A stretch of 64,000 nt of DNA from Neoechinorhynchus agilis (lineage: Eukaryota; Animalia; Acanthocephala): positions 11,820,784 to 11,884,783 of the forward strand of contig CM121341.1 in NCBI GenBank assembly GCA_051530055.1, read 5' to 3'. Below, piece after piece: positions 1 through 62,775 of the stretch. The translations under genes and the position numbers were made by a program. Under the pieces are notes generated by a model, which saw only the letters and a program-made list of their open reading frames with translations, was not told where the DNA came from and did not search any database. How positions within the stretch are numbered: position 1 is the stretch's first letter; each line of letters begins with the position of its first letter.

Positions 1-2387
1 GCTATGTTTATCTGAGACCATTCATCAGGGGACGCTGCCAACATGTGCTCAGCGAAGGAAGTGATATTTGATTGATTGAGAACGTTGGTGGCTTTGAAAC
101 AGGGGGAAGAACCATTGTTGGATGTAAGATTTCTTGAACCCCGCCAAATGATAAAATCATTCCGGCGTAAATCAAAACGACGAGGCTTAATTTGAATAAA
201 ATTATTGAAGACCGGGACACTACTTGCTTCATTGCAATGTTCAATGCAAAGAGCGCTAATAACATCGTCCCACCCCGAGGTTTTAATCCAACTCGATGCG
301 GCCCTTTTCCAGGGACAAAATCTTTTTGGTGCAACGACATGCCACCAAGGAGAGGAATAAGGCATAAAATAGCTAATTCGCTTACTGTCACAAGCTATTT
401 GAAATCGAGTTCTACAGGGCCAGTATAAAGAGGGCCAAAACTTAATCGACTCCCGATCATCGATTGCCTTAGCCATAAAATGTTGTCGGCCATACAGAGA
501 GAGTACTTTTGGTTTCTGCATTTTCGACCCGATACTTCTTGTGACCGTTGTTAAAATCGAGTCACTAGCTGTGACCACAAATTCATTTATGTCCTTGAGC
601 TGATCAAAAGCGCCAAAAGTGAAAGCAAAATTTATGGCAGCGTAAAGATGTTGATGTTAAGAGCACTAAACTTAAATCTACGGCACAAAATAATATTCCG
701 TCCCAATTCCCACACTAAGATATTGTGTCCAGCAATACGGAAAATTGATGATTGAGAACCAGTTTGGGTTTAACAAATGAGTTACTTCGAGCAAGACACA
801 AGTCTAGAAAAGAATGAGACCTGCCGTCGGTAAACGTGGGATCCGCAGAAACAATATGGTCACGGGTATTATCCGAACGTAAAATGGCCTTTATCCATTT
901 GTGAGATGGGTCGTTGAAATCTCCGAAGCAAAAGTCAATTCCGGATGCTAAAACATTTTTTATAAGATCTTTATTATGAGTGAGGTGTATTTTCCTAGGT
1001 TTAATATAGAAATTACCTAAGAGCAATTTCCTCCAATAGAAACGTATTGAAAATAAAGCGTAAGATAAATCTGGGGAAGTAAACTCGGAAATTAGGGTTG
1101 GTTGGAGGCAAGTTTTAAAAATGGATAATAAGCCTTGAGAGTAGTTTAAAAGGGGTTTTGTACAAAATAAAGAATATTCACTAGATAAAATATTAAAACT
1201 ATTCGGAAGGTAGTTAAGAGAGTACAGCGACTTAGTTTCTTGGATAAAAGTAATATCACTTTTCTGTGCTTCGGACAAAAGGCCAGGAATACCCAGAAGC
1301 CCGCCTGCGTTCCACTGCGCAATTCTCAATTCCATTGAGACCTACCCTTGATGAGATTTTGGACCCCGTCAGCACAAACCTGGGTTTATTCGCTTATGAT
1401 GTTGCTCACGAACTCCCCGACCTCTCGTACATGTCCACATCGTCTACACCTTTGCTACTTGAAACCAGTGCTCAACTGCGTTTGCAGGGTGCTGGAGCTA
1501 CCCCGGTCGCGATCTGAATATCTTTGAATTTTGTCGTGAGAGTTTCGATAAGACCGTTTAAGTGGGTAGACAGTCTTCTCTCAAGACACTGAATGGCCGC
1601 GGTGATTCGTAGATCGACCATGTCGAGGATTTTAGCGGAGAAATCAGGCAACTTCTTTTCCAAGGTGTCATCATAAGTCGTTCGTAGATTATTAACATCT
1701 TTGGATGTACCCAGTTGTTGCCTTGGGTATGTTTTTATGGTTGTATTATAGTCGTCGTAACGCGAAATCTCGTTTGAAGTAAATTTAACCTCCATGGATT
1801 GGAAGAAGGATCGCTCAGTGCATAGTGCGTCCCTCCGTTCGACCGCAGCTTTTACAATAGCTTTGGGAATAAACTTTCCCGTTTTTGATGACTTGAGGAA
1901 AAAGAACAATTTGACTCCGAATTTTTCCTCGAACGCTATCTTATCTGCATCATCAATATCTGGAGAGAGCCCAGAAACGATAAAGGTTGATTCATAACTT
2001 GTGTTCGAAATGGTCACACCTGCAAGGTTGCAGTTTTTGATGAAAGCCAGATAAGCCTCCATAAAATCCGCTGCTATAAACCTGATTTTCAATATTCCTC
2101 CGAAATAGCTGATAGATGAAATGCGATGGATATCATCCTTAAAGGATTTGAGCCGCTGCGCCAGATAACGTCTGTGTAGCTCTTCTATGGGTTGTATTGG
2201 ATTTGCTTCGATTTTTATCGTATTGGGCCATCTTTTAGAAGGCACCTCCACGAAATGCTTACTATTTTGATCGCTGAGAAGTTGACTCCGACTGTCCGTA
2301 GGCACGGGAATTCTCAGAACATTGGGTAGCCCGTACGCCACCCTCCACCGCAACAGCTTGTTGCGCAAACATAACCTCTGTCTCCAC
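1..2387 (-). mobile_element. APE-type non-LTR retrotransposon (LINE family B), 5' part: ORF1 (1472-2368), endonuclease ORF (715-1335) and linker running off the window start
   Basis: 715-1335 has APE motifs (IAQWNAGG, ITFIQETK, FCFGDFND, PTF..GRSHSFLDLCL). The gag-like ORF1 is near-identical to 55359-56590. A shifted frame stays open from about 650 to position 1. Confidence 0.85.
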
Positions 2388-7299: not shown

Positions 7300-8350
7300 A
7301 ATGCAAGACAAATATAAACCCGAAACCAATTACATTGAACTCGCGTAAAAGAGATGGTCACACCCTGTAGTGATAAAATCCAATCCGATTCTACCAAGAG
7401 AAAAGATTCAAAGACGAAAGGGAGAGAATCAAATCGATCTAATAATCCGTAGGCAAACTAAAAAATATTTCACATGCAGCTTCTTTAGGCAAGAGTTCAT
7501 CGATAAGATTTCTAAAAATTGCGATTTATCTGGCATTTAAGTTTCTGCTAATAGCTTTGAATCAACATTGTTTGTTTGCGGATTATCAACAGGTATCGAG
7601 GATATTGATAAGAAGGATTTCGAAAACAAGTTACAAAAACAGGTAAGGGGCCGACATTCCGGGCTTGGAAATAAAGTTTCATATAAGTGATATTGCCGAC
7701 AAGACGACTTCCATTTTCAAAGATGTTCTGATTGCCAGCGATGGAGGTATTAGACACAAAAATTGTGCACAAAATCATTGTAGCGGGAGTTGCCCGAAAA
7801 CCGATCAGATTTCTGCAAATGCGGACAGACCGAACATTACGCTTTCTCAAAATCCTATACAGAGTTCAAAAAGTATGTAATATGGGAACAACAGGAACGA
7901 ATTGCCTCGAATACAAATGGCACTGATTATCATCCTCAAAGGCAATCCGAAGCTTTCGACCGCTCACAGCGAAATTCATCAGTAATTGATCAGTACGGGA
8001 ATCCTCGAAGAACGATGATAAGTTCAACGACAATGGATACGTTGAGTGTGTTAATTGTCGAGAGATGACGATTAATAAAAGTAGGGATCACAAGACAAGT
8101 AGAAGATTTGGGAAGTTATCTTCCGCTCCAATTAAAGACAAAGGCAAGTCAAAGAAGAAATGAGCGGGGAATGGGCTGGAGTACTGGGAATGAATAGGCA
8201 AGTTTAGAAATGTATTGGATGTCCTTCCACTCAAATTGCTGAATTCACCGCCAACATTATGAAGGTGGCTTGTTTGCGCGGCGATTGCTCGACATCAATG
8301 GCCACCAATTAACTAAAAAGCGGTTGAGAAAACTCTCAAAACTTGACAAC
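7300..8350 (+). mobile_element. Degraded ORF1 (gag-like) of a LINE related to family B
   Basis: KRWSHPVVIKSNPI, KNCDLSGI..SFESTLFVCGLS and CKCGQTEHYAFSKSYTEFKKYVIW align with LINE-B ORF1 (KRWPNTIKIEANPI, KNCNLAGV..SYESTFIVSGLS, HCAFSKNCKAFKEYVVW); stops and frameshifts present. Confidence 0.7.
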
Positions 8351-8490
8351 TACGTACCTTGATCGAAAACTGGTGCCTAGATTAAGGTTAATGATGAGTA
8401 AGTACGCAGAATAATTGCGGAACAACTCTTGATTTGACGCCGTAAATAATATGATCTAGGTGTATAGGGAGCAGACGGATCTGAGGTTGG

Positions 8491-8661
8491 TGTTTGTTTA
8501 TGGCGAAATTAAAAGAATTTATTAAATCCGATATTTCGGCACAATCGTTTGCCTTTATCAAAGTTGTTTGCAAATGTTTACGACGTTAGATCGTGCCCAC
8601 AAGATTGTGCCGAAATATTGGAACCAATAAATTCTTTTAATTTTTCCGCCATAAACAAACA
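8491..8661. mobile_element. Fold-back insertion (about 56-bp imperfect inverted arms, 8491-8546 and 8603-8661) containing a hammerhead motif
   Basis: The arms are reverse complements; shares taacgtcgtaaacaYttgcaaacaa and GAAATATC with the 11531-11695 insertion. Confidence 0.75.
8527..8564 (-). ncRNA. Minimal hammerhead ribozyme motif, U3-A8 variant
   Basis: Minus strand: UUGAUAA-A-GGCA-aacgauug-UGCC-GAAA-UA-UC. Stem II 4 bp, palindromic AUAU stem III, weak stem I. Confidence 0.7.
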
Positions 8662-9469
8662 TGAATAGTTTAATTTTCAAACACTGGGATTGATGCAGTG
8701 TAATTCAGGCGAGAATGTAGAAATCCACAAATTACATTGTGAAATAGTAATTGGTGATATTGTTTTGGTACAAGCGACGAAATCCCTACTTCCAATCAAT
8801 CAAGTTACCACCTCCTAGCTGAGCTTGTTATTTTTTAATATCCCCTTTAGCTCTTTCCGAATGTATTTACGCCATATTTTCCATCTCCTATGATGAAATG
8901 AAAATTTTAATAGGTACTGTTTATATTTGACCGCGGACAATTCACCTACCTCGGATTAAAGAGCTATTAAAAATCGGCTAAATTCTTGATTGGGCGTTTT
9001 TTTTGGGAACTGCGATTCTTTTCATGAACGAAGTAACCCAGTTATCAGATCGACGGACCTACATGAGATTATCTTACCTCCATGTCCCACTTTTACCACT
9101 ATCTTATGTTATTACTATCTGGATTTGTGTTTTTTAAGAAATAAATACTCCGTAAAACCCGTGGTCATATCTCAGTAGGCTATTTTCGGTTTGTCTAGGC
9201 CCGATCTTATTGTATGAAGTTTCGACAAAACCTCTTTCTTAAGTAAAAGCTTTAAATAATCATCTCTCGAAATTCAGCTTATAAACTCCTGCACTCAATT
9301 TTTGTGCATCCATTTTAGGAAAGATTTCCCTAAAAAATCATCAAATTGACCTCCGTTTAGTTCCAGGCATTTTTAAATTGATTTTGCAGAGGTCGTTTTC
9401 AGCTAACTGAGGACTACAAGAAACTATTTTCAATTAAGCCATATTCGTCACCTTCCGTCCTTTTCATAT

Positions 9470-10247
9470 TGTCACGGGTTAATGAATCAAAAAACCTGGT
9501 TTTTGTGGTACTTTCTGGAGTTTGCATGTTAACACTTTTTAGTTGTCAAATAACAAACCACCGCCACATGAATAATCACAACAAACCCACACGAACCCAC
9601 ACGAATACTCACATTGATGTCATTGTTTGCCACTGTTCACAGCTACGTCCGTACAGTTCCTCCCCTTTTCTTTTAGCAATTCGTAGTATAGCAGAACTGG
9701 CTTTCGCCCTATTCGCACACTGCGTCTCTGCAACGGATCATCTTTCACTTTCTGTGCCAGATCTTCTCTTCCTCAGCCTCCGTTGGCTTATTCAGATCAG
9801 AATTATTGTTTAGAAGTCTTCACCCGGTAAATGATTATTTATTATGGGCGTTTCGAACCTCGTCGGGTTCATCATCAGTTTGTTAGTTAGTAATAGACGT
9901 ACAAACAAACAAACTGATGATGAACCCGACGAGGTTCGCAGAACGTCTTTAATAAATAATCATTTACCGGGTGTAGACCTAAACAATAATTTTAATCACA
10001 TTCCCCGGTACCTCACATATCGACATATTCAGATCATTTCCTCTACCACTACCGGCTCCCCTTTCATTTCCTCTTCCGACCCATCGTCGATCCTCATCTC
10101 CTGCTCTATTGCGATATTCTTTTCAACTAATCCGATCTTCTTTTTCCAATCTTTTCCTGTTATGACCTCCGTGTATTCGTTTCAATCCTCTTTATTTGTC
10201 TCCACTACATACGAGAATGGTCCGTTCTGCTTACTTATCGCGTGACA
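9470..10247 (-). mobile_element. 3' LTR of a Gypsy-type retrotransposon, interrupted by a 191-bp palindrome
   Basis: Termini TGTCACG...CGTGACA (TG..CA with 7-bp inverted ends); a purine-rich tract (ggatgaaagatgg) precedes it on the minus strand; lies directly downstream of the integrase remnant. Confidence 0.65.
9801..9991. mobile_element. Palindromic element (HH-A family) with a hammerhead motif on each strand
   Basis: Arms of about 85 bp are reverse complements. Minus 9844-9881: CUGAUGA-U-GAACC-cgacga-GGUUC-GAAACGCC. Plus 9911-9950: CUGAUGA-U-GAACC-cgacga-GGUUC-GCAGAACGUC-UUU. Confidence 0.8.
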
Positions 10248-10279
10248 CCATCTTTCATCCACATTTTATTTTAGTTCTT

Positions 10280-11190
10280 GTCATTGAGATGTTTTCCAAG
10301 GGTCGGTCTTATATTATCCATTAAGATTAGAATTCGTCGACCAATCATCATTTCGGCTTGGCATTTCTGTGTAAGCGTTTTTCGGTGTACTCCTATAACA
10401 AATCAGGAAATTTTGCAGGCTGAGGTTCTCCGGGTTTCGCTCCCTTTTAAAAGTTGCCACAAATCTCTCCGCTAGTCCTTTTGTCTTTAGATGATAGAGT
10501 GAACATCGGTAATACATGATTCCATTTGCTTTGCAAAAAGACTTTGAGTTCGTTCGAGATAAATTGAGGTCCGTTATCCGACACAATTCTCTTAGGAATT
10601 CCAAACTTTGCAAATGTTATTCGCAAGTACATGATAGTAGTTTGTGCCGTTAAACTTAGTTTTGGCCAAACCTCATGCCACTTCGAAAATGCGTCCATCG
10701 CTCCGGCAAATCAACAGTTCCATTCATCGGCATCCGAGATAACACATCAGCGTAACAGTTATCGGTACCAGCGATATGTTTCACTTCGTAGTCAACCGAA
10801 TCGCCCATCTTATTAATATTGAGTTCGCCACCTTCCTTTGATTTCCCTCGTATTCGAAAATGTATTGAAGAGGATTGTGATAATTATATTACTGAAACTT
10901 TCTTCCAAACGGTAGTGAGCACCCTTGAGGCAAAACACACCGGTTGTAGCTATCTGTCGTCATCCACTTGGAAAAGAATCGCACGTATTTCTGACTCGCT
11001 AGCATCACAATTTATTGCTATCTCGAAGTCTTGATTGTAAGAAGCCAATCCTCGTGGTCTTCTAAGTGCATCCTTAACCTTTCTGAAAGCGCCCTGATGT
11101 TCTCAGTTTCATTCCCATTTACTGCCTTTCTTGCTTAATTCGTATAGTGCGTTGCAACATCGTTGAAACTGGAAATTAGCTATATAACCG
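10280..11190 (-). mobile_element. Gypsy-type pol remnant (RT connection, RNase H, integrase core) with deletions and frameshifts
   Basis: LYELSKKGSKW..AFRKVKDAL, INCDAS, PVCFASRVLT, DAFSKW, FGIPKRIVSDNGPQF, GLAERFV..FK, FL..YRSTP. Confidence 0.85.
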
Positions 11191-11530
11191 ATCACATGAA
11201 AGTTTTAGAATGAATTCCGACAATTCCCCTGAAGATTACGACGTCCCGGAAGCAATTGCTGATTACTTACTTGGCCTAATACGATACTTATCGGAAAACT
11301 TTGTAATGGACGCTGGAGTTGATATTAATAACATAGCGCTCGAATATGCAGTTTCTAGCGTCACAGGTGGAGATTATAGTTTTGGAATTGAACCAGATCA
11401 TGGAAATGTGACTCGGCGTGCATACATGGAGAGTTCGATAGAAGAAGAAGACGAAGACACCGGCAGTGATCCTATCTTTGAAAAGACTGAAGAGCAGCGG
11501 GCAGGTATCAGAACGAAACTCCGGGCATTT

Positions 11531-11695
11531 CATTTATTTGTTGATAGGAGAGATAAATGAAATTAAGATTTTAACGTCGTAAACACTTGCAAACAATCGC
11601 TGAAGAAGATCCGAGATAGTGGATCGAAATATCCTATAAAATCTTAATTTCATTTATCTCTCCTATCAACAAATAACAATGAATTATCGTTTCAA
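11531..11695 (+). mobile_element. Fold-back insertion in PKA-R: perfect 40-bp inverted repeat (11534-11573 / 11637-11676) around a hammerhead
   Basis: CATTT is duplicated at 11526-11530 and 11696-11700; removing 11531-11700 restores the frame RTKLRAF|YLYENLRVEQLEQIIDAL. Confidence 0.8.
11597..11637 (+). ncRNA. Minimal hammerhead ribozyme motif with a canonical core
   Basis: CUGAAGA-A-GAUCC-gagauagu-GGAUC-GAAA-UA-UC; predicted cleavage after C11633; stem I has 3 of 4 pairs. Confidence 0.8.
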
Positions 11696-12519
11696 CATTT
11701 TATTTATATGAGAACCTTAGAGTCGAGCAGTTGGAACAAATTATTGATGCTCTTGAACCGCTAAGTGTAAAGGCAGGTGCTGTACTCATTAAGCAAGGTG
11801 AAAAAAGTGATAGTTTTTACGTTATTGAAAACGGGAAGTTCCAATTTGTAGCAAATGGTAGTATGGTGTATAAATTTATAAACACTGGATGTTTTGGAGA
11901 ATTAGCTCTGGTTTTCAATACTCCTAGAAATGCAACAATAAAGGCAGAAACCGATGGGATGCTTTGGACGATTGACCGAAGAGCTTCTATTCCTTTATTT
12001 AACGGCATTGATCTTAACAGCAAAATTTACTTACTGAATTCGGTTAAACAGGAGATCCACGAGGACGGTGATTGCATTTTTAGGCAATGGAAGGATGCGG
12101 ATTGTATGTATTTTGTGGAAGATGGAATCGTGAGAATCGAAATGGAATCAAATGGTCTTGTGGAAACTGTCAATTAAATCAAAAAAGGAGATTACTTTGG
12201 CGAATTGGCATTGATCGACAACAAACCAAGAGCAGCTTCAGCCTTCGCGGTTGGTAAGACAAGAGTAGGAGTAATGACGGCTGATAAGTTTAAGGAGTAC
12301 ATGGAACCGATGCTGGATACCTTGGAGGAAAACAAAAAGAAGTATTATGAGCAGGTCAAAACTGTGTTTGGTGATTAAGTAAATGTCCACATTATTTCAT
12401 TAAATATTGATATTTTGTCATTGTCAATGATCGAAAATACGAGCATTACGTTTTTAATTTCACGTTTGCGGCGCTAACAATTAAAATAACGAAAATACAA
12501 GTTTAAATTGTTTTTTTCA

Positions 12520-15170
12520 GATCTTAAGACGACAAGATGCCGACGTAGTCATCTTAACAGAAACGCGGTTATCCCCCTTCAACAGCAATTCAGCAATCCT
12601 TCCCGAGTACTCTTCCTTCCATACGTACCGCGATGACCGTTCAGGAGAGGGATCTCAATTGACGTACGGCAATCGCTGCTTTGCTCTTTATCTCCCAGAC
12701 TGTCTTCAAAACCCCGATTTAGAATTCACCTTTGACCTGAGTCCCCCTTGCTCCAAATTGACTCTATGATGGAGCTCATAAACCCCACAAATTCACACCA
12801 CTTCTTGATTGCAGGAGACTTCAATAATTTATTTCCCTTTCTACCCTTCTCCGAGTTACGTAAACTTATTGAGTTCCCAACTCGTCTTGACGCTCAACTC
12901 GGCATTGTTTACCAATATCGACGCCTACTCATCCGCCTCTAAACTCCCTCCCCCCCCCGCGAACTCTGACAATTCTTCTGCCCTTATCACTCCACCTACC
13001 CCACCCTAGCGTATAAAATTTCCCCATTTACCCGTCTGGGAAACGTGATCATCACACCCAAAATTACACAAATAACCCTCCCTTGGTCATGTCCTCCCAA
13101 TCCTCAATCATAAAAATTCCCTAACTTCGGCAATTCCAAAGAAATTCATTAAGATCTCCAACCGCGACCCTCCATGGATAACCCCCATTCTGAAACTTCT
13201 ACAAAGGCAGGCTTCTAAGGCCCATCGCAATAGCTTCCTAGACTCTCCCCGTTTACAAAAAGCACCTACGAACAAAATACTTATCGCCCGTAAAAACTTC
13301 TTTTCCTCTAAAATTCGATTAGGTGCCAATTCATCATGACGCGATCCGGATCCTTTCCCTAATTTGTCCTCCACTGAATTAAAACAGGTTCTAGATTCCA
13401 TTAATCAGAACCTCTGCCGTGACTCAATTTACAATCACTGCTCAACATCAGCCTTCACACAATCTTACACGCCCACACCTGAAACTTTTGTCAACTCACC
13501 GATACTGCCCTCAGTTTCGTCATACGAAGTACTAAAGTATTTCATGAAACCACTTTCCTCTCAATCCGAAATCCCAAACTGGTTTCTTCGCCGCATCATC
13601 CACAAACTCATCTACCCTCTTACTCACATTATAAACCTCATCTTTTTGTGTGGCATCTACCCCTTTTGTCTGAAAACTGCAGAAGTTATACTTGTTCCAA
13701 AATAGGGCATCCTATTTCGGCCGAATAATCCCGTCCAATTTCCATTCTACCCGCTCTTTCAAAAATTATCAAAAAGTGCTTTAAATCTCGCCTTCTTTCA
13801 CTTCTTCGCGAAAAGTTATCGCCCCTACAATTTGGTTTCCGACCCAGATTTTCTGCAACCGATGCCCTACTTTCCATTTATGACAAGCTTCTACGTAAAC
13901 TCGACAATCATCCCTCCCATGTCACCCGTCTCATTCAACTTGATTTATCTAAAGCCTTCGACTCAGTGGACCATTCACTCCTCCGAGCCTGCTCCGATTT
14001 TGGTCTCAATTTGTGGCAGATCCGCTGGCTCGAATCTTATCCTCACAATCGCAAACAATACATTCACTGCCGTTCTACCTCTTCTATCAGCCTATCTACC
14101 TCAAGGTGCTGTTCTGTCACCACCTCTCTTTAATATTTTTCTAAACAACCTCAAACATCTCTCCTCTCACTCTAAACTCTTCTTATACGCCGACGATGTC
14201 ACCCTCATCATCCATTCACCACCCCACCTCTCCCTTTCTTTAACCTCTAAAGAAATCACACACATAAAAGATTTCTGCACCAATCACAAAATCCACCTGA
14301 ATTTCTCTAAATGCTTCGAAATGATCCCCTCATTGTTACGCAACCTCGCATCCTCTGCCGAGCTTCTAAATGACATCCTACGAGTAACCTACCTTAGAAT
14401 TCTGGGTATCCAATTTCTATCAAATTTGAAATCGGACTTGCACATAACTCTCTCCCTCCAAGCACAGCACTTTTAAAACTTATCTCCTCAAACGCCTCCG
14501 ACATTTAGGAATTCCTTCACCCAACCTCTACAAATTTTGCTTCTGCTTTATCTTACCATCCGTCATTTACGGTTACCCCCTATTTTGCAAGCTTTCCAAA
14601 TCGCTAATCCGCCGTCTTGAAATTCTTCACAAAAGAGCATCTAAAATTTGCACAATTGACTTTCCCCCTCTGACCTAATACCTTGATGCTATTTTCATAA
14701 AATAATGAAAATGCTTCGCAGCCCGACCACCACAATTTCTTCCACATATCGCTCCCTTTTCACACGAGCACAACACTCGTAATCCTAATTCGTTTCACCC
14801 TCCTATAACTCGCAGCTCACTATATCTGCGCTCCTTTTTCCATGCTGGCCAATCTTCTATGATATCATGACCTGAAATGATTCTGAGGAAAGAGCAACCT
14901 TACAAGCGCTCCTGCAAGCAATAAACATTAATTCCCACTAGAACGGACCTTCCCACCCAACCGGATATTCTCAAACGTACGGACACATCCTCACCCGAAC
15001 GAACCGTCCCCGACTGGATAGTTCCCACCCGAGTAGGCATCCCTCCGACCAGATATTACCACCCGAACGGGCATATCTCGACTGCATATTCCCATATTAA
15101 CGGATGATGACCCAAAGGTACATGGGTCCTCCTAAACCTTTCTCTGTATGCAATAAACGTGTTATATATA
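12520..15170 (+). mobile_element. APE-RT non-LTR retrotransposon (LINE family C), frameshifted, with 3' UTR
   Basis: DADVVILTET and LIAGDFN (APE); LPQGAVLSPPLFNIF, FLYADD and YLRILG (RT); the 3' UTR has CCCACCCGA-type repeats and AATAAA. Confidence 0.85.
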
Positions 15171-16509
15171 AATAGAAGAGCGACCGAGATTATAGCTCGA
15201 GGAGAACCGAATTAATGAATTTAAGACAGTGCCTTCCCTGGAGGTGCTCAGCTATAGAGTAAATATGAAGAACTCGAGAAGGATATTTTCTAAATTCCAC
15301 GAATATATAAAAATTGCGGAGTTGCATGCAAAATCTTATAAAGATATACTTTAAATCGCAGCTCAAAATAAATGAATTCAAAAGTCGTTATTTCATTATA
15401 TACATGCGGATTTGTCACTTAAAAGAATTCGCCAAAATTTCAAAAAGGAAATACAACCTAAAACAGTATTTTTAAATAATGCTACATCGTTCCACAATAT
15501 TTGTCCCATTTGATGCATAAATTACATTCCATAATACTTGTCAAATAAGATCAAACTTTTCTTTGCTTGCGTTATACTGAGTTTCAAAAGTAATAGATTG
15601 TTGAAAATGGTTATTCAAGGCTTTCTAGTTAGCTTTGGCACCTAAAAGTAAGTGGTTGTTAACAGGTGAACAAAAAATGCCTATTTTTACACTGTTGTAA
15701 GCAATTTTTACATCGTTTTTCAGCTCGATTAGCTGAGAATTTTACACTTTGAGGAATCCGTGAGCATTTTTTTTATTAATTGCACAGTGAATACGGTTGT
15801 TGATTGTGGAGTGGATCACGGGTTCGGTTTGGTGGAAAATTGTGGTTATTCTTGTAAGGTTTCATATTTCCTCCTTCTCATTTCGATTGATGCTATGGAA
15901 AAATGGGGGCAGGTTGGGAGATGATGAAATGAATAGGTATTAGGATTGTTTTGCTCATGTGAAAAAGGAACAACTTTAGAGTTCCTGTTTAAAGGCACTG
16001 ATGGTTCCTCCGCCGATGAAAATGGCGAATTATTCGTCTTAATTGTTGAGTTTCGCGAATAAACACAAACTCTGATGTTTCCCTGTTGATTCCGTAAACT
16101 TGTTATCTACTTCGTTTTTATGATAAAAGCATAAATCCAGGAAAGTCAACAATTAATCATACTTTTCCTTAACTTTTGTCCAAAAATGCGATTCCGAATT
16201 TCGCTTTCTCAGTTCTTAGCATAGATTGTCAATCGTTTTTAATTTTAAGCGATCGAAACCATTTGCGATAATTTGGATAACTCTACAATTATTATCATAG
16301 AAAAATAAATGCTAATTATTGGGTTTTTTGAAAAGAATTAGTATTAATGAAAAATTGGATCTCAAGGCTGATAAGAAAAACGATTTAAACAATCCATCTT
16401 TTCAAAAATAATGATTCCGCTTCCTAAGTTTTCTTTCCATTCATTATCCATTTTCCTTTGCCGACTATAAAATCTAAATAACTAAAATGCGACAATAAGA
16501 ATCGTCGAA

Positions 16510-20200: not shown

Positions 20201-20370
20201 GCACATTTTAAGACTTTAAAATGTGACTCTGTTTCATGAAACGAATTTCTCATGGGAAGGTCGTAACTTTTATCTACAAACCGAACGTCGAAAATATTAT
20301 CAATAGTGTCGATATGTTAGGAGGTACCGGGCTATATGATTAGAAGTGTTATTTCAAAGTCTGTACCGCG

Positions 20371-20448
20371 GTGTTTCCAACTTCTTCGAGTTCATTATCA
20401 GTTTGTTAGACTACGAAGTTCGAAACGTTTTTAATAAAAAAATTACCG
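20371..20448. repeat. Internally deleted HH-A palindrome remnant
   Basis: Minus: CUGAUAA-U-GAACU-cgaaga-AGUUG-GAAAC; plus half: aGUUCGAAACGUUUUU. Confidence 0.6.
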
Positions 20449-20640
20449 AATTTCGAATTAGGAATTAAAAAGGGATGTATAAAATTAAAAAACAATTTTT
20501 TTCAGAAAAACGACCGATAGCCACTCAGACCTATTTTCATAAAATTTAACATTTGCTAAAAATTATGTGGTACGAGAAATTGGATTAATTTTGTTTTAAA
20601 ATGTCGATATGTGAGCTGGTAGAAGTGTTATTTCAATATT

Positions 20641-20700
20641 CTGATGGTGAACCCAGCGTGGTTCGAAACCTTTTTAATCAAAAATTCTTTACCGGATGAA
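20641..20700 (+). repeat. Single HH-A arm with a degenerate hammerhead
   Basis: CUGAUGG-U-GAACC-cagcgu-GGUUC-GAAACC followed by ...tttaccgg, as in 9911-9970. Confidence 0.65.
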
Positions 20701-23132
20701 AAGCCAAATAACACTTCTAATTATTAAAAAACTTTATTCCGACACTCATGTAGAAAAAGACACTTATCATTGAACCAGCACGTGTTATCGTGATTTCGCT
20801 TTTGGCGCGGACGTGTGAGTTTTATGCGAAATGGGAATGCTCAAGACTTAGATAAAGAAATGCCATCACGTTCCGAGATGCCCATTATTTTCACGTCATG
20901 CTCAATCTACACACATAGAGAAAACTGAGATAAGAGCTACAGGTTGAAGTTGACAAATCTTCCTAACTTCCGTGATGGCTTGATACTTTTCCTTAACGAG
21001 AGAAAAAAGGAGCTTACACCAAGAAAGGATTCGCGAAAAAAGGTTTTCACGAACGTTCACAACTTCTTTAAAGCTCGCTAAAACCAGTAGGAATTCCTAA
21101 GAATATTCTTTGCATCTTTCACTTCTATATTCCGATTATTTTTTGAGGTGTTGATTTTAAGCCGTATATGGAGCCTAAAGTATAAATGTTGTTGCAAAAC
21201 TATTATGTACGATATGTTTGAGGTAATTTTTTCACTTAATGTGTACCTTCTTCTACAAAGCTTTCGCGTCAAGTGAGTCTTTCATTGTTTTCTGCCTCCC
21301 GAAACACATTATACCGGTTTCAAATTATATTTCAGTTCAATTCAGTTGATTAGCTTAGGCTAATTTAATCGAGTTCCTTTTAACTAAGCCCCCGGGGTCA
21401 TCAACTGTCGGTATAATTAGCCAAGCCGTACTTTAATTCCGACGCTCGTTTGACTAAATAAGTATCGCCTACAGGGTCATCCGGCACTAATTACTCATTG
21501 ACATTTCCTCTTTATTGTTAAATAAATTGAAGAACCTAATGGCAGTCATAGTCGGAAATTAATGAATAAAACGAATGAGACCCCAGGGAAGAAGATCGCA
21601 AGAAAATTATAGTTCATAAGGGCGTTCATTGTTGTGAACGAGATGCGTACATAGTAGCCTTTTTCAAGGTTTTTCGTTAAATGGGTATCCAAATAGTCTC
21701 TTTTGTTGCACAATGCTTCATTTTCTCACAAATCTCTACTGTTATTTGAAGCTCAAAAATATTGATTGGCATTACCAGAACCAAGTCGTAAACTTTTTAA
21801 ATACCACAAATTTAATAATTAAAGTCGTATTCCTAACTCCGCTCCCTTTATCAGTAAAATTTGCCTAATAGCAGCTATTAAGTCTTTTGGAACTCACACA
21901 TAAGTGCGTGTCTATCATCCAGCTCGGATCAGAAGGCGACTAATAATAATTCATCAAACATAATAAATCATCGATGCTCCTAACCATTGGGTAAGAATAG
22001 TGCTCTGTTGTTTATACGAAATTAATTTTGGCTAATCGCGAAATTAATATAGTCACCGCAGCCTCAACCGGCGACACTTTTAGAAACTTTCAAGCATTAC
22101 GACCGTGAAATTACCTTAAATGTCCGTATAAAACGCGTCATCTTAGGATTCACGTTTTTTGAGAATTCACATTGATAACCCATTGAAGTTGGCAAAGTTA
22201 TGAGCTCCTCGAATTTCTCTTTGCTGAAGGATCATGTCCTTTGGAGGTTGAATTTATCGGAAACAGATTGAAATCTTGCATGTGGACACAATCTCTTTCC
22301 TATCATTCCTTTCCGCCATTGATTTCGTGACCATTTATCTTATTAATGATCTCTATTTAAAGCTTAACAAGTGTTAAATCCTTATTTTAGGACAATACCT
22401 AGTTTTTGAAAGATAAGTATCAAGTATACAACTTCAATTTATGGGTTTCACCATCTTGGGCATAATGTAATATAATTGTTTGGTTGATGAATTTTTCCTG
22501 AAGTGAAATAAGATTACAAGAATCTAACCCGAATGCCGCCCTTCGTCGATCTTGATTTCAATGGGAAAATTCAGTCCTTAAGTTTTAAAATTCACCCATT
22601 AGTTACAATCGTTGAATCTCCTCGCCATTTATGACAACATCAATTATTACAAAAGCGGTTTTCTTTGCCACAATGATCAAAATCTTCTAGATGACTACGA
22701 TAATTTATCACTGATTTTGCCATTAAATATTTGCAGAACACTTTCATCGCTCTTATTAAATCCGCACTCCAAATCTAATTCGAGTACATCTAAACCGTTT
22801 TTAATCGTATGAAGTGGATATTAAGTAAAGAATAGACAAATCCATTTAGTACTGTTCTAGAGAGTGAGCGATTACATCAGACTACTAAGTCGTCAATGAA
22901 CGGCGGTCGATCATCAGCACTCTTATTTCCTGGCACCAGACAGCATTTCGCACGCTTGTCAACCAATCCATCACGGGTAAATGTTCTCTTTAAATTAGGT
23001 CGGCTTGTTTTTCATCAAGTCAATTTGATTACCGGTCCCATAGTGTTAGATTGTTGCATTAATTGGACGACTAGCGAGTGTCCGCCACCTCTCCAATCCT
23101 CAATTATAGATATCTCTGCGTTTGGCGTTTTT

Positions 23133-23465
23133 ATGGCTAAGCATCATCCTGATTTGATCTTTTGCCGTAAGCAACCCGGAGTGGCAATTGGGCGTCTATG
23201 TGAGAAATGCGATGGTAAATGTGTTATTTGCGATACTTATGTGAGGCCAACGACTCTGGTTCGGATATGCGATGAATGCAATTATGGATCCTATCAAGGG
23301 AGATGTGTGATTTGTGGCGGTGTTGGCATGTCAGATGCTTACTATTGCCGAGAGTGTACAATCCTTGAAAAAGACCGAGATGGTTGTCCGAAGATCGTGA
23401 ATTTGGGCAGCGCGAAGACCGATTTGTTCTACGAGCGCAAGAAATATGGATTTAAAAAAAGATGA
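23133..23465 (+). CDS. PHF5A: PHD finger-like domain-containing protein 5A (SF3b subunit, Rds3), 110 aa, intronless
   Basis: [34 protein letters not shown]...[14 protein letters not shown]. Confidence 0.98.
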
Positions 23466-30477: not shown

Positions 30478-32175
30478 ATGCCTCAGCGATCTTTAGGCCA
30501 AGTTCCGCTGGTCAACTCCGAGCCGGTTTTGTGTCCTGATAGGAAGAGGCCGACGAACCAACCAAGCGGTGCCACCAACGGAGCCACAGCAGCACATTCC
30601 GCCCCAGCCGTCATCCAGCCAGTGCCGCCAACGACGATAACGATCAACGCCGACTCATTAAGAAGATCTCGCTATTTTTGTATGATGTGTAGCACTTGGT
30701 GTCTGTCCGAGTCGACCCCCAATCCGAAATGCTGTATCTTATGTCATCGAACCGGATGTAATATGTGCTATCCCACTCATCCGGATTCTCAAACTGATCT
30801 CTTCTGTCTCAGCTGCCGCTTTCTCCGAGGCAGTCAACATGGATTAAGATTCTGGAGCGAACTCACAAACGACTATGTGATCCATATGCTCAATCAATAT
30901 CGAATCGAGTATCCGGACGAAGCTGATCGAGGCACGCTGATGCGAATTTTGTTCGACAATCGGGATCGAATCACAATGAACTTACCGAATTCTAATCGCA
31001 CAGGAACACAACCATTGATTAGGAATCAGCCGAAACGACTGACTGCGGTTCAACAAACCGTTCCACCAGTGCAGCCTGCGTTTGAACAAACCCGACGACC
31101 GACACGCGCTGGGCCACTCGCTATTCAAGAGCGACCGTCACAACCTCATCACCAACCATTGAATCAATCACTACCGCGACATCTTCCTCCACATTACTAC
31201 TACAATCCAGTCCATGGTGCACCAATAAACACATCTCATCCTATACCTCATCCTCCATCACGGGTTCCTACTCGTCAGTTCTCTAATGCAGTCAATGATC
31301 TCAATTCTACGATGCAACAGGCAACTATGATGTTCACGAATATGGCTCATCAGATGGATTCTCTGTTTGATCAGGCGTTTCCGAATCCACCACCTCCACC
31401 CGGGCATCATTCTTCAAATAGAGTCCCGGTGATCGTCCCTCCTGTCTCCAATCGAACGCCATCAATTGTTAGAGAACACAATCTTTGTATTCATCGACAG
31501 ACGATCACGGTGACCAGCAACAATATGTCCCGCATCGATTATCCCAATCAACCGCAGTTCGTGACTTACAGGTATCATCAAGTTGATCCTTCTTATCCAC
31601 ACCGAACGATGCCGCCTATCCAAATGCAGATTCCTTTAAGTGTCGACCAAACGCTACTCCCCCCACTACCAAATCAAGTGGTTCCACAGCAATTACCCAC
31701 GACGGACGGATCAATTGCGCTGAGATCACAGGAACAACCAGTTGAGAATTTTGCATTCAGTTCGATTACGTCTCGATCCCAGATCGGTCGATTGTCTATT
31801 GACCAGCTCAAGTCTGTCCTCAATGACCTTCTTCTACCCATACCAACGAACGCAACCCGAAATGTCCTCGCTAGAATGGTCCGGGAAGAGTATGACAATG
31901 AAACTCAGCGAGCTGAGCAACGGCGGAAATCAATGGTGATCCACCGGGAACAACAAGAACGAAAAGATACAGTAGCGGTTGTAAAGACTGAACAGGGTAA
32001 AGCATCGGACTCAAAGGAAGAGACAGAGTGCGTGATCTGCATGGACCGAAAGAGAGAAGTCGCCTTTCAGAATTGCGGTCATTTTGTTGCTTGTGCAGAA
32101 TGTGCAATGAAAGTGCGATCATGTCCAATGTGCAGACAAAGGGTCCTCGATATTATACGGATTTATATGTCTTGA
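30478..32175 (+). CDS. RNF34/RFFL (CARP)-like E3 ligase: FYVE-like Zn finger, SAP-like helices, C-terminal C3HC4 RING
   Basis: 565-aa single ORF; N-terminal Cys cluster; CVICMD...FQNCGHFVACAECA..CPMCRQRV. Confidence 0.8.
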   Translation: MPQRSLGQVPLVNSEPVLCPDRKRPTNQPSGATNGATAAHSAPAVIQPVPPTTITINADSLRRSRYFCMMCSTWCLSESTPNPKCCILCHRTGCNMCYPTHPDSQTDLFCLSCRFLRGSQHGLRFWSELTNDYVIHMLNQYRIEYPDEADRGTLMRILFDNRDRITMNLPNSNRTGTQPLIRNQPKRLTAVQQTVPPVQPAFEQTRRPTRAGPLAIQERPSQPHHQPLNQSLPRHLPPHYYYNPVHGAPINTSHPIPHPPSRVPTRQFSNAVNDLNSTMQQATMMFTNMAHQMDSLFDQAFPNPPPPPGHHSSNRVPVIVPPVSNRTPSIVREHNLCIHRQTITVTSNNMSRIDYPNQPQFVTYRYHQVDPSYPHRTMPPIQMQIPLSVDQTLLPPLPNQVVPQQLPTTDGSIALRSQEQPVENFAFSSITSRSQIGRLSIDQLKSVLNDLLLPIPTNATRNVLARMVREEYDNETQRAEQRRKSMVIHREQQERKDTVAVVKTEQGKASDSKEETECVICMDRKREVAFQNCGHFVACAECAMKVRSCPMCRQRVLDIIRIYMS

Positions 32176-35481: not shown

Positions 35482-36165
35482 ATGAGTTTCCTATTTGGTC
35501 GTCGCCAAACCCCGGACGATATGCTTCGAGCAAATCAACGAGCTCTCAACCGTGCTATGCGAGAGTTAGACCGAGAACGATCTAAGCTCGAGAATCAGGA
35601 GCAGAAAGTCATTGCCGATGTCAAACAGATGGCAAAACGTGGGCAAATGGACGCTGTACGAATCCTTGCCCGTGACCTTATTCGTACTCGCGGCCGAATC
35701 AAAAAATTTATTTTAATGCGGGCTAATATTCAAGCTGTTTCATTAAAAATAACTACACTCAAATCACAGAACGCTATGACACAGGCAATGAAAGGAGTTA
35801 GCCGAACTATGCTTCGAATGAACCAGCAATTGAAGATTCCTCAAGTCACTCGTATTATGCAGGACTTTGAGAAACAGTCTCAGATGCTTGAAATGAAAGA
35901 CGAAATGATTAGCGATGTGATTGATAGTGCACTTACTGCTGATGGTGATTTCGACGATGAGGACGCCGAAAGCGATCGTTTGGTTGAACAAGTTCTTGAT
36001 GAGCTTGGAATCGAATTGCAATCACAGCTAAACTCTTTGCCTGCCAATCATACCGCAACGATGGAATCAGCGTCTATCACTAAACAACAAATGAAACCTA
36101 TAGCAGCGACTAGTGATGCTGACGATGATCTTATGGCCAGATTGGATGCACTCAGGCGAAATTAA
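35482..36165 (+). CDS. CHMP2A: ESCRT-III subunit CHMP2A (Vps2), intronless
   Basis: MSFLFGRRQTPDDMLRANQRALNRAMRELDRER...DDDLMARLDALRR. Confidence 0.95.
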   Translation: MSFLFGRRQTPDDMLRANQRALNRAMRELDRERSKLENQEQKVIADVKQMAKRGQMDAVRILARDLIRTRGRIKKFILMRANIQAVSLKITTLKSQNAMTQAMKGVSRTMLRMNQQLKIPQVTRIMQDFEKQSQMLEMKDEMISDVIDSALTADGDFDDEDAESDRLVEQVLDELGIELQSQLNSLPANHTATMESASITKQQMKPIAATSDADDDLMARLDALRRN

Positions 36166-36660: not shown

Positions 36661-39537
36661 ATGACGATACCTAAGGATGTTATAAACTCTATCCGCCAAC
36701 GACTGGACGTTCTATCTAAAGAAAAACACGATCTGAACGCACAATTAGAAGCTCTTCGAATCGCATCAGCTTCTACCATTTCCGCATTCGAGAATGTTAC
36801 AATCAACCCTGCTCCAGATTTGCGACAAAACTTTGAAACGCTTTCTGAGTTGACCCATGGAATTACAAATCATGTTGGAGATCTTCACATTATTAAAAAC
36901 AATATCACCTCATGCATCCAAAGATTGAACGATGTTCGTGAACTACAATCTACTGCTGTTGACCTTAGGCAAGCAATCGATAACGAGGACTATGAGCAAG
37001 CCGCTGCGTTGGTTCGACGGTACCGTATCATATCTCAATCTTCCCATTCTACTTCAAACGCTCAAAGCGAACTCCAATCAGCAGCTCAATCGATTGAAAC
37101 ATGTAGACGTCAGCTTGAGATCATAGCTACTGAACAGTTTGATAGCGCTATAGCAGAAGCGAACATGGCCGAAGCTATGCGATATTTTAAAATATTTGCT
37201 CTACTTGACCTCCATGATATCGGCCTTCAAAAATTCGGTAGGCATTTATGTAGGGACTTATCATCTAAAGCTCAGTTGATCTTTGAAGAAGAAAATGAGA
37301 CGTGGATAGGAAAAATTACTAGTCTCTTAGAAATGGTCGGACGGTTCATAGAAGCTCATCTGCCGATATTTGAGACATATTATGGACCAACAGCAAAAGT
37401 TATTGAATTTATTGCAGTTATCGAGTCTGAAGTCGATATTCAATTTGGTAGGTTCGTCCAGGAATTTCGTGAAGGTGCGAATATCGATAATGTTTTGAAA
37501 AATGCAGATCAAAATGAAATCGAAGGGGATTCACTACTAAACGACTTAGTCTGTCTAGTGAACAGAGGGGAACTGTATGCGAGGTTCTTGAGACGAAAGT
37601 TGGAGGAACCATCTTTGGGGATTAGTGGTGAGGTCGTGGACGGATTTTTACAGTAGGAAAAGATTTAAAGATTGGGGAATCTGAAAAATCATCTTCCTGC
37701 CATTAAAGAAAAGATGCGATCTAAATAGAACAGTTCAAGAGATTGTATCACTCTATATTCCTTTAGAGGACCGTCTTATCTCGCAAAATATATCCAGAGC
37801 AATGAAATCAGGCGATAAAACTACTCTCGTTGATCGCGTTTTTTATTTCGTCCTTCAATCGACCAATCGGGCTCTCTCAACTTCCAATACCGATGCGCTA
37901 TGTGCCGTCATCAATAATTGTGTAACCAGTCTTGACTTGTTCAAAAAACACCTACAGAATAATCTCCGTGAAGGATTCGGAAATAATTTGGAAATCGTAC
38001 AAGCTCTTTTGAGCTCCTCGTCGTCTTCCAACATGCCGATAAATGATGGAGAACTTAAAAGTGCAGAATCGGGCGAACATAAAAAGTTGCGCAGTTTTAT
38101 TGAAAATCTTCAAATGGCTGATGAATGTGTGGATTATACAATGCGACTAAGGCAGCAATTCGATCAATTTGTCACTGCTAACACTGTCGGTGTTACTTTT
38201 GCGGTCAAGGGATTGAAAGCTCGTTGAAAGTCGAGAGTTAGTCATTTGTTTGTTTCTATTCCATTCTATTTTCCATAATATCTTCAGTGCAGCATAAGAC
38301 CATCCGAGGCTCAATTAATTGACTTTATAAAGTCTATAAAACGTACTTTTGCTTTATTCAAAGACTACCTACCTTTAATCTGTACTTAATAAGGAGTTGA
38401 ATTTTAAAACCTTAAGCTGGGTATCCTGTAATAATTTTCTAACGCACAAACTCAACCAATATCATTTCGTTCCAGCAAAGCTCATATAACAAAATATTTT
38501 GAGTTTTAAACCAAACGACAAAATGCGTTTTTCGTCTATTTTAACACGGTATCGACTGGTATTAATCCTTGTGCTATTAGAGCTTAACTTCTTTATCCTG
38601 TTATTCTAAATCTATGTTATAAAGACTCATTTGAAATAGCAAGTTAAGGTAACCAGGGTTGCCAATATAATTGCTATTCGCAGTCTTAGAAAAAAGTATG
38701 CTCGAAAATTCCAACCCCATTTGAGGTTTAAACAATGATGAAAGTTTAACCCTGCTGGTGGTATGAATAGAGCTGAATCCAAATTTACTCTGATTAATCC
38801 AATTAAATTAAAATCAATTAAAGTTTCATCCGCTCAGTTACTTTACGTCGTCAGTGGATAAAACCTTTCATTTCCAATCAGATTCTCGAACCAAGATCAA
38901 GACATGCATAGGAGAATTCGATTTAATGGTTAGTCGGTATCGTGAACTCGTTGAAGCGTCCATTTATAAGCTTCGAACCGATTATATGAGACCGCGTGCG
39001 TCCAAAACTGCCGAAGAACTTCTCGACTGTGATTATGTCCTTGCGGAGTCCGAGTACATAAATCACGAAGTAAATGACTCATTTATGCCTTCACTGGTGA
39101 AGTTCGTTACTCGTGTGCGCAATGACATTGAATATGCTGGAGTTGCTCTGAGTGAACGGATTCTGGAACGAGTAACCACCATGCTCGCTGCAGAACTTGC
39201 CAAATCGCTTGAACGATACATTCATGTTTGTTCTTTTAACCATTGCGGTGGTCTTCTTTTGGATCGACAAATTCGATCAGCAGTTGCTTATATTCAATCC
39301 AGTAGTCCCCATGGATTTGGAGCGAGGGAACAATTTAGAAGACTCTTAAAGATAACCAATGTCCTTAGCTCAGAAACGCTCATGGAATGCCAAACATTGC
39401 TTAGTGAACAGGACGAATTTGCCTTAAAAGGTGAATCTGAAGCCCGCGTAAGTTTCACAAAGTTTGAACTTCAGAAGCTATTATTACTGAGAAAAGATTT
39501 TGACGTGAAGGATGTGCGAGCAATAAAAAGTATCTAA
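36661..39537 (+). CDS. COG4: Conserved oligomeric Golgi complex subunit 4; exons about 36661-37635, 37710-38189, 38855-39537
   Basis: DYEQAAALVRRY, YFKIFALL.L...GL..F, RTVQEIVSLYIPLE, LVDRVFY, FNHCGGLLLDRQIRS, REQFRRL..I..VL. The first intron boundaries are uncertain. Confidence 0.85.
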
Positions 39538-57353: not shown

Positions 57354-57389
57354 TGCTTGAGAAGGAGGATGAGGCCTCGAAAATTCGCA
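57354..57389 (+). ncRNA. Minimal hammerhead ribozyme (U3-A8 variant) in the Penelope 3' region
   Basis: UGC-UUGAGAA-G-GAGG-augagg-CCUC-GAAA-AU-UC-GCA; all three stems can pair; lies 62 nt after the GIY-YIG stop codon. Confidence 0.85.
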
Positions 57390-62598: not shown

Positions 62599-62775
62599 GA
62601 ATTATTGTTTACAGTTCTTCGCCCGGTAAATATTCTTTTTATGGAAAAGCGTTCGACGAATCTCGTCGCATTCATTATCAGTTTGTTGAAGGTCTTTTAA
62701 TACCCGACGAGGTTCGCAGAATGTTTTTCCACAAAAAATAATATTTACCGGTTGAAGACTTGTAAGCAATAATTC
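62599..62775. mobile_element. HH-A palindrome, second near-complete copy, about 210 bp upstream of WDR33
   Basis: Termini gaattattgttta / taagcaataattc; internal cccgacgaggttcgcagaa shared with 9925-9943. Confidence 0.75.

Follow-up and report, generated by a model that had tools for sequence, protein, structure and literature searches.

Insertions of Penelope-like elements (PLEs) are 5'-truncated and often accompanied by an adjacent inverted copy that is also 5'-truncated, and a tail of 30-40 bp is often present at one end; the duplications that these insertions make are short, at 8-10 bp (PMC8557442; PMC3846280). The commonest inverted form is head-to-head (PMC3846280). One PLE protein that has been purified is predicted to be dimeric; it cuts the two target strands and extends both, reverse transcription begins at two adjacent internal sites, the stretch between them being the tail, and hammerhead cleavage is dispensable for insertion in vitro (PMC11167929). 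Non-autonomous PLE relatives have 3' ends in common with autonomous families (PMC8557442), and in the acanthocephalan Pomphorhynchus laevis PLEs account for 9-15% of the genome (PMC8557442, PMC7943196).

The hammerheads of PLEs are minimal (min-HHRs). They have a short helix I, and they share several features that make a chance resemblance unlikely, namely a nucleotide that stands between position 9 and position 10.1, a G10.1-C11.1 pair, a palindromic stretch at 15.2-16.2 and compensatory changes (PMC4209133). Metazoan non-LTR retrozymes are short non-coding repeats with type I hammerheads that are thought to depend on PLE machinery; they are head-to-tail tandems of 170-400 nt, in which each unit has a complete type I hammerhead, and they yield circular RNAs (Cervera & De la Pena 2020, PMC7229834; Li et al. 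2026 preprint 10.64898/2026.07.22.740005).

Here we compare with these systems a hammerhead-bearing palindrome from the acanthocephalan Neoechinorhynchus agilis. It lies in a stretch of 64,000 nucleotides (GenBank assembly GCA_051530055.1, contig CM121341.1, positions 11,820,784 to 11,884,783), which we call the window and in which all coordinates are given. A preliminary description of this DNA had placed the unit at 9801-9991. The palindrome is indeed there, but the unit extends further: what was inserted runs from 9800 to 10025, includes a 34-bp tail and is bounded by an 11-bp direct repeat. We refer to this insertion as copy A, and to the family to which it belongs as HH-A. The parts of copy A are the following.

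9789 to 9799: left copy of the 11-bp target-site duplication, TATTCAGATCA; it abuts the left arm and matches 10026-10036 exactly.
9800 to 9898, minus strand: left arm, an inverted, 5'-truncated, tail-less element end that reads outward, with its 3' terminus ...AATAATTC at 9800.
9847 to 9878, minus strand: minimal hammerhead motif of the minus arm, CUGAUGA-U-GAACC-cgacga-GGUUC-GAAA-CG-CC, in which 16.1 is C and not U.
9899 to 9991, plus strand: right arm, a direct, 5'-truncated element end.
9914 to 9947, plus strand: minimal hammerhead motif of the plus arm, CUGAUGA-U-GAACC-cgacga-GGUUC-GCAGAA-CG-UC.
9992 to 10025, plus strand: one-sided 34-bp tail, TTAATCAC...ACATATCGACA, by which one arm alone is prolonged with further element sequence, with homologues in copies B and C (below).
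10026 to 10036: right copy of the 11-bp target-site duplication, TATTCAGATCA, starting 34 bp past the right arm.

The insertion of 226 bp consists of two head-to-head arms with their 3' ends outward, plus the one-sided tail. By our own estimate, the chance of that 11-mer recurring within 100 nt is about 1e-4 or less. Copy A resembles described PLE insertions (Arkhipova 2006; PMC3846280; PMC8557442; PMC11167929) in its head-to-head, inverted, 5'-truncated copies with outward 3' ends, in its one-sided extension (34 bp, against 30-40 bp) and short duplication (11 bp), in its two discrete 3' termini, which match two reverse-transcription start sites, and in the position of the hammerhead motif shortly upstream of those sites. 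It differs from them in having neither a reading frame nor a direct pLTR between its arms; at only 226 bp, it is made of two element ends. We conclude that 9800-10025 is very probably the product of a single retrotransposition event of the PLE type.

A repeat search shows copy A as a near-perfect fold-back that occupies 9795-9997 and contains three nested inverted repeat pairs.

9854 to 9892 and 9900 to 9938: innermost inverted repeat pair, 95% complementary.
9816 to 9852 and 9942 to 9978: inverted repeat pair, 89% complementary.
9795 to 9813 and 9979 to 9997: inverted repeat pair, 89% complementary.

In a self-BLAST the two arms are 84% identical over 207 aligned positions. They are about 11% divergent and also differ by a subfamily-diagnostic indel (GAAAC versus GCAGAAC), which would mean either that the insertion is old or that two different template RNAs were used; the intact duplication, identical at 11 of 11 positions, is compatible with both alike. 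The plus-strand RNA of 9800-10025 is predicted to fold into one continuous hairpin of -128.1 kcal/mol, as compared with -42.6 +/- 4.3 kcal/mol for shuffled controls (z -19.7). The fold-back of the preliminary description is borne out by the nested repeats, the arm identity and this z score.

The motif on each strand is equally real. A 24-nt stretch, CTGATGATGAACCCGACGAGGTTC, occurs exactly once per strand, at 9914-9937 (+) and 9855-9878 (-), where shuffles lead us to expect none, and on both strands of copy A it has the layout CUGAUGA-U-GAACC-loop-GGUUC. The core defects that had been pointed out downstream of it are also present. On the minus arm the 24-nt stretch is followed by GAAACGCC, in which GAAA is intact and a C replaces the U at 16.1, while on the plus arm it is followed by GCAGAACGTC, in which GUC is kept and the GAAA box is broken by two extra letters. 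With these changes (C16.1; GCAGAA), both arms of copy A depart from the core CUGANGA...GAAA...UH in type I order. Other genomic copies have that core: the complete canonical motif CUGAUGA-U-GAACC-CGACGA-GGUUC-GAAA-CG-UC is found in 30 DNA contigs (reading ...CTGATGATGAACCCGACGAGGTTCGA and then AACGTC), and letters 9939 and 9941 are each missing in about 8% of plus-arm reads, which gives the canonical GAAAC. An exact-pattern scan of metagenome contigs for the 29-nt canonical motif returned no match.

We next considered whether the motif belongs with the min-HHRs of PLEs. In both arms an extra U lies between A9 and G10.1 (CUGAUGA-U-GAACC). Helix II, GAACC/GGUUC, has 5 bp, among them the G10.1-C11.1 pair, and is closed by a 6-nt loop; the 15.2-16.2 region is a palindromic A-CG-U with loop 3 absent, intact on the plus arm of copy A; and helix I has three A-U pairs only. 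Minimal hammerhead ribozymes of metazoan PLEs are reportedly treated as well by Lunse et al., in RNA Biol in 2017. The likeness to the published min-HHRs (Cervera & De la Pena 2014, PMC4209133) extends to the type I order, the unpaired nucleotide between A9 and G10.1, the G10.1-C11.1 pair, the lack of a helix III hairpin, the very short helix I and the palindromic ACGU, with which helix III is possible between two molecules only. The differences are that helix II of HH-A has 5 bp, versus 6-8 bp in the published families, that both motifs of copy A are mutated (C16.1; GCAGAA), and that the canonical GAAAC is present in only about a quarter of arm-equivalents, by a rough estimate from reads that includes those on the GAAAC-type left arm. 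By the same rough estimate, the other arm-equivalents have GCAGAA or AAAGAA-type boxes.

The window also holds two sister fold-back families, alike in architecture but with other helix II and helix III letters, one with helix II GAUCC/GGAUC and AUAU, the other with GGCA/UGCC and a U3-A8 core. Their 15.2-16.2 region reads A-UA-U, and the differences in helix II between the families are compensatory. A strict min-HHR descriptor of our own making, from which copy A deviates on both arms, has three exact matches in the window versus 0.005 expected (200 dinucleotide-preserving shuffles). The Rfam hammerhead models have no match at gathering thresholds in the whole window or at E<=10 in 9700-10100, where only generic miRNA-hairpin models are returned. 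This negative is uninformative, because the same models also miss a letter-perfect min-HHR at 11600-11633. Judged on its letters, then, the motif class is real, and copy A itself lies off the descriptor.

Of the three descriptor matches, the one at 11600-11633 (+), which reads CUGAAGA-A-GAUCC...GGAUC-GAAA-UA-UC, is part of a 170-bp hairpin insertion at 11532-11701. The frame into which this hairpin is inserted we take, by eye from translations, to be cNMP-binding (protein kinase A regulatory subunit-like). A hairpin-free form, joining 11531 to 11702 with 6 shared letters, ATTTAT, is supported in DNA by 16 reads and by a contig of depth 353, and it also occurs in both putative RNA runs, one contig of which (1,311 nt) spans 10892-12300 without the hairpin. 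Since 20 of 275 letters of this form (about 7%) are unlike the window, what is expressed is a paralogue or else a divergent allele, one that has no insert at 11.5 kb. The second match, a U3-A8 minimal hammerhead with GGCA/UGCC at 8532-8561 (-), lies in a sister fold-back at 8491-8661, the plus arm of which is degenerate; the depth of this fold-back is about 110-170x that of unique flanks, and a target-site duplication was sought for it with nothing convincing found. The elements at 8.5 kb and 11.5 kb have a central GTTTGCAA.TGTTTACGACGT stretch in common. The third match, at 57357-57386, is of U3-A8 type with helix II GAGG/CCTC and a palindromic AT, and lies outside any obvious fold-back.

To place copy A within its family, we compared it with the other copies in the window. 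Relatives had been noted at 20.4, 20.65 and 62.6 kb, and we find them at 20.33-20.45, 20.60-20.72 and 62.60-62.78 kb.

20307 to 20447: copy B, with an inverted arm that has a tail and reaches about 10 nt upstream of CUGAUAA, and a direct arm that starts inside loop II; its far end is decayed.
20307 to 20345, reverse strand: tail of copy B, homologous to the tail of copy A.
20602 to 20723: copy C, with an inverted arm made of the tail plus about 15 nt, and a direct arm with CUGAUGG...GAAAC.
20602 to 20625, reverse strand: tail of copy C, homologous to the tail of copy A.
62599 to 62775: copy D, with two tail-less arms that both end ...AATAATTC, one reaching about 9 nt upstream of CUGAUAA and the other starting inside stem II.

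When aligned, the tails of copies A, B and C cease to be similar at the identical letter, ...ACATATCGACA, and the tail-less arms (left in A, left and right in D) have a common stop, ...AATTC. Centre junctions are not alike from one copy to the next (A, B, C and D), whereas the outer termini are constant, and in the reads opposite-strand joints occur at many coordinates. Since centres vary and outer ends are fixed, the palindrome looks generated at each insertion rather than copied as a unit, contrary to the earlier proposal that it spreads as one. The pattern, as read from these alignments, argues that two independent 5'-truncated copies would be joined in each insertion event. Copy C has a possible 6-bp duplication, TTAAAA, at 20596-20601 and 20724-20729, a tentative assignment made by eye in AT-rich DNA; at copies B and D a target-site duplication was sought and none is clear. 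Duplications differ in length: that of copy A has 11 bp, that of the 11.5-kb sister insertion 6 bp.

Reads and contigs extend the comparison to the whole genome. Onto 8300-12300 we mapped whole-genome raw reads of at least 80% likeness, one DNA contig set and two putative RNA contig sets. Depth is about 16 in unique flanks and about 6,000 and 13,600 in the two element bins. Because the raw depth of the arms is inflated by a related repeat, head-to-tail and about 70 nt long, a copy number from that depth was dropped in favour of the tail junction at 9992, where 11,158 reads correspond to roughly 700 tailed ends genome-wide. The lower depth at 9900, 2,290, is in keeping with a gradient of 5'-truncation. 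Among the Logan contigs for the DNA run, 32 part into unrelated, AT-rich flanks after 9991, 72 after 10026 and 37 before 9799 (agreement 0.42-0.49); both 3' termini are thus genuine family boundaries. Most reads have A at 9845 (89%) and C at 9992 (91%), and the letters of copy A at these two positions are private mutations. No empty-site allele of copy A is seen among the matches listed for 8300-12300, nor do these give a majority letter for 16.1 (9848). The depth ratio of element to flank is about 50-580 in the putative RNA runs versus about 380-2,900 in the DNA runs, and specific expression or enrichment of the element, sought in the two putative RNA contig sets, is not indicated.

The repeat of about 70 nt, itself derived from the HH-A end, is very abundant (thousands of reads). 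It spans loop II to ...CTAAACA, has AAAGAA in place of GAAA and no CUGAUGA box, and shares with copy A 9924-9953 and the complement of 9807-9824, loose read ends being found at 9807, 9824, 9924 and 9953. In some 2,100 reads the tail end is followed by 28 letters, the same in each, after which the element resumes at 9928, and this compound junction (10026 to 9928) has itself been multiplied more than 100-fold. In about 1,300 further reads the tail-less end abuts an inverted tail end (9991/10026). Both junctions are compatible with a PLE endonuclease that targets its own tail sequence.

Modelled on published PLE biochemistry, the insertion of copy A would have proceeded as follows. A PLE endonuclease/reverse transcriptase would have made staggered cuts on both target strands, 11 bp apart, and each free 3' end would have primed reverse transcription on template RNA. 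On one strand, priming at the distal internal start site would have included the 34-nt tail and given the end ...ACATATCGACA; on the other, priming at the proximal site would have given the tail-less end ...AATAATTC. Both cDNAs would then have come to a halt upstream of the hammerhead box, at a distance of about 15-20 nt, and their head-to-head joining would have left a palindrome that has outward 3' ends, carries the tail on one side only and is flanked by an 11-bp target-site duplication. The presence of the hammerhead motif in the insertion would follow from its place in PLEs, a short way upstream of the sites at which reverse transcription starts: the predicted cut site of copy A lies 45 nt away from the proximal end and 78 nt away from the distal one, and the motif is therefore carried by any cDNA longer than about 80 nt.

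The candidate enzyme would be a PLE protein of this genome. A PLE reading frame (reverse transcriptase with GIY-YIG) was sought in the window and beside the copies, with Pfam on 20 reading frames and an Atlas look-up, and none was found; the searches returned only LINE-type reverse transcriptases and AP endonuclease remnants. The link to PLEs made in the preliminary description is upheld by the min-HHR peculiarities, the inverted arms, the tail and the duplication, while the autonomous Penelope partner that it called for is not found within the window. Copy A itself is most likely an inert relic, because both of its hammerheads are mutated at essential positions and any transcript of it would form a long, perfect hairpin.

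Other elements and genes of the window are listed here.

715 to 1335, minus strand; 13832 to 14476, plus strand; 51260 to 53287, minus strand: LINE remnants with AP-endonuclease and RVT_1 domains (Pfam).
10314 to 10808, minus strand: frame fragments, ...FGIPKRIVSDNGPQFIS..., that we take by eye to be like a retroviral-type integrase.
22896 to 23465, 30478 to 32175, 35482 to 36165, 36661 to 39537: host genes, by Pfam PHF5-like, RING-finger protein, Snf7 and COG4 (at least two frames).

LINE-type reverse transcriptases lie at 13832-14476 and 51260-52396, and the Atlas clusters nearest to the former are jockey-like. The fragments at 10.3-10.8 kb, over which (10314-10808) DNA depth is 2-4x the unique level, suggest a putative LTR-retrotransposon remnant just to the right of the copy A insertion. 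Across the 4 kb of 12001-16000 the GC skew is -0.23 to -0.28, unlike the rest of the window.

How do other explanations compare with a PLE-type insertion? One is a mobile palindrome that spreads as a unit by way of a rod-like RNA, with a working hammerhead in each polarity, in a viroid- or retrozyme-like manner. It would account for a very stable fold-back, for hammerhead-like motifs on both strands and for several palindromic relatives within one window, and the rod-like predicted fold with such motifs on both strands is also what copy A shares with Avsunviroidae and other viroid-like RNAs. Unlike these, copy A is genomic DNA with a target-site duplication, and RNA replication or circles are not evidenced. 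A palindrome copied whole is hard to reconcile with centres that differ between copies whose outer termini are fixed, or with a lopsided, one-sided tail inside the duplication. In addition, both motifs of copy A are mutated at essential positions, the canonical GAAAC is confined to roughly a quarter of arm-equivalents, and the sense motif is predicted to be sequestered by its antisense in a duplex of -128 kcal/mol. Hammerheads in two polarities are a by-product of inverted duplication, and the two-polarity rod RNA that had been proposed is trivial for such a structure. RNA enrichment is absent, the ratio of element to flank being lower in the putative RNA runs than in the DNA runs, and the putative RNA contig sets give no sign that the copy A locus yields an RNA of viroid- or retrozyme-like kind. 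We regard this explanation as very improbable. Still less probable, in our judgement, is an ordinary MITE, a non-autonomous DNA transposon bounded by terminal inverted repeats, whose hammerhead-like letters would be due to chance. The size of about 200 bp, the palindromy, the high copy number and the fact that Rfam gives generic miRNA-hairpin matches only would all suit a MITE, but its duplications should be of fixed length with transposase-type terminal inverted repeats, as the preliminary description had set out. Instead, copy A has a duplication of 11 bp and the sister insertion one of 6 bp, 34 extra element-derived bases stand at one end, and the arms are truncated internally at different points; moreover, the combination of CUGAUGA, extra nucleotide, 5-bp helix II, GAAA, palindromic CG and UC recurs in three families of unrelated sequence, with 0.005 descriptor matches expected. 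The MITE was rejected on the one-sided tail and the unequal duplications. Formation of the palindrome by local DNA repair or replication was likewise rejected, given identical termini at independent loci and the duplication.

A further proposal refines the PLE-type insertion rather than contradicting it: the template could be a short non-coding, hammerhead-bearing parasite of PLE machinery (retrozyme-like or pLTR-only, about 95-130 nt), for which the twin insertion is one form beside tandem arrays. Both arms of copy A extend 15-20 nt upstream of CUGAUGA, so that they end at almost equal template positions, which could reflect a short defined template rather than random truncation; yet the arms of B, C and D are truncated variously, as expected for a template of any length, and the window offers only seven arms. 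By inspection of the sequence, no reading frame runs through the motif of copy A, and head-to-tail relatives exist in the reads (the unit of about 70 nt, and the junction of tail, 28 nt and 9928 in about 2,100 reads), although these tandem forms have no CUGAUGA box. Non-autonomous PLE relatives with the 3' ends of autonomous families are on record (PMC8557442), but the representation of HH-A in the RNA libraries is not above background. As for the metazoan retrozymes, HH-A shares with them short non-coding repeats, type I hammerheads and the existence of head-to-tail relatives; copy A, in contrast, is an inverted pair, and the tandem relatives, without the CUGAUGA box, differ from retrozyme units with their complete hammerheads. 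Copy A itself has no tandem of complete hammerheads, neither circular nor abundant RNA is evident from the putative RNA contig sets, and the ratio of element to flank in the putative RNA runs is below that in the DNA runs. The nearly equal arm lengths of copy A and the tandem relatives speak slightly for a derivative of this kind over the end of a coding PLE; taken as a whole, we consider the short non-coding template a tentative possibility that falls short of an even chance. A more specific version, in which HH-A is a hitch-hiker of about 95-130 nt derived mostly from masters with a dead box (GCAGAA/AAAGAA), its hammerhead acting as a recognition or structural module and its hairpins feeding small-RNA silencing, seems to us unlikely. 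If true, it would make HH-A one of the smallest retroelements known, non-coding and running on Penelope-type machinery; its hammerhead would be a recognition or structural module rather than a ribozyme, and the twin-insertion hairpins could feed small-RNA silencing of the family.

Returning to the PLE-type insertion, its elements are familiar. PLE hammerheads and inverted insertion structures are already well described, and N. agilis is a new, expected host; the system that the preliminary description put forward as a candidate for an undescribed one has head-to-head truncated copies, a tail and a short duplication, which are those of a textbook PLE insertion (PMC8557442, PMC3846280, PMC11167929). 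The read census suggests that most copies have no canonical GAAA, which agrees with the cleavage-independent insertion of PLEs in vitro (PMC11167929). Copy A would be a clean genomic example of what the in-vitro work on a lizard PLE predicts, in that both strands are primed, the two start sites are separated by 34 nt and the cuts are staggered by 11 bp. The hammerhead palindromes of N. agilis are, very probably, the expected scars of Penelope-type retrotransposition and not a new ribozyme-based mobile system.
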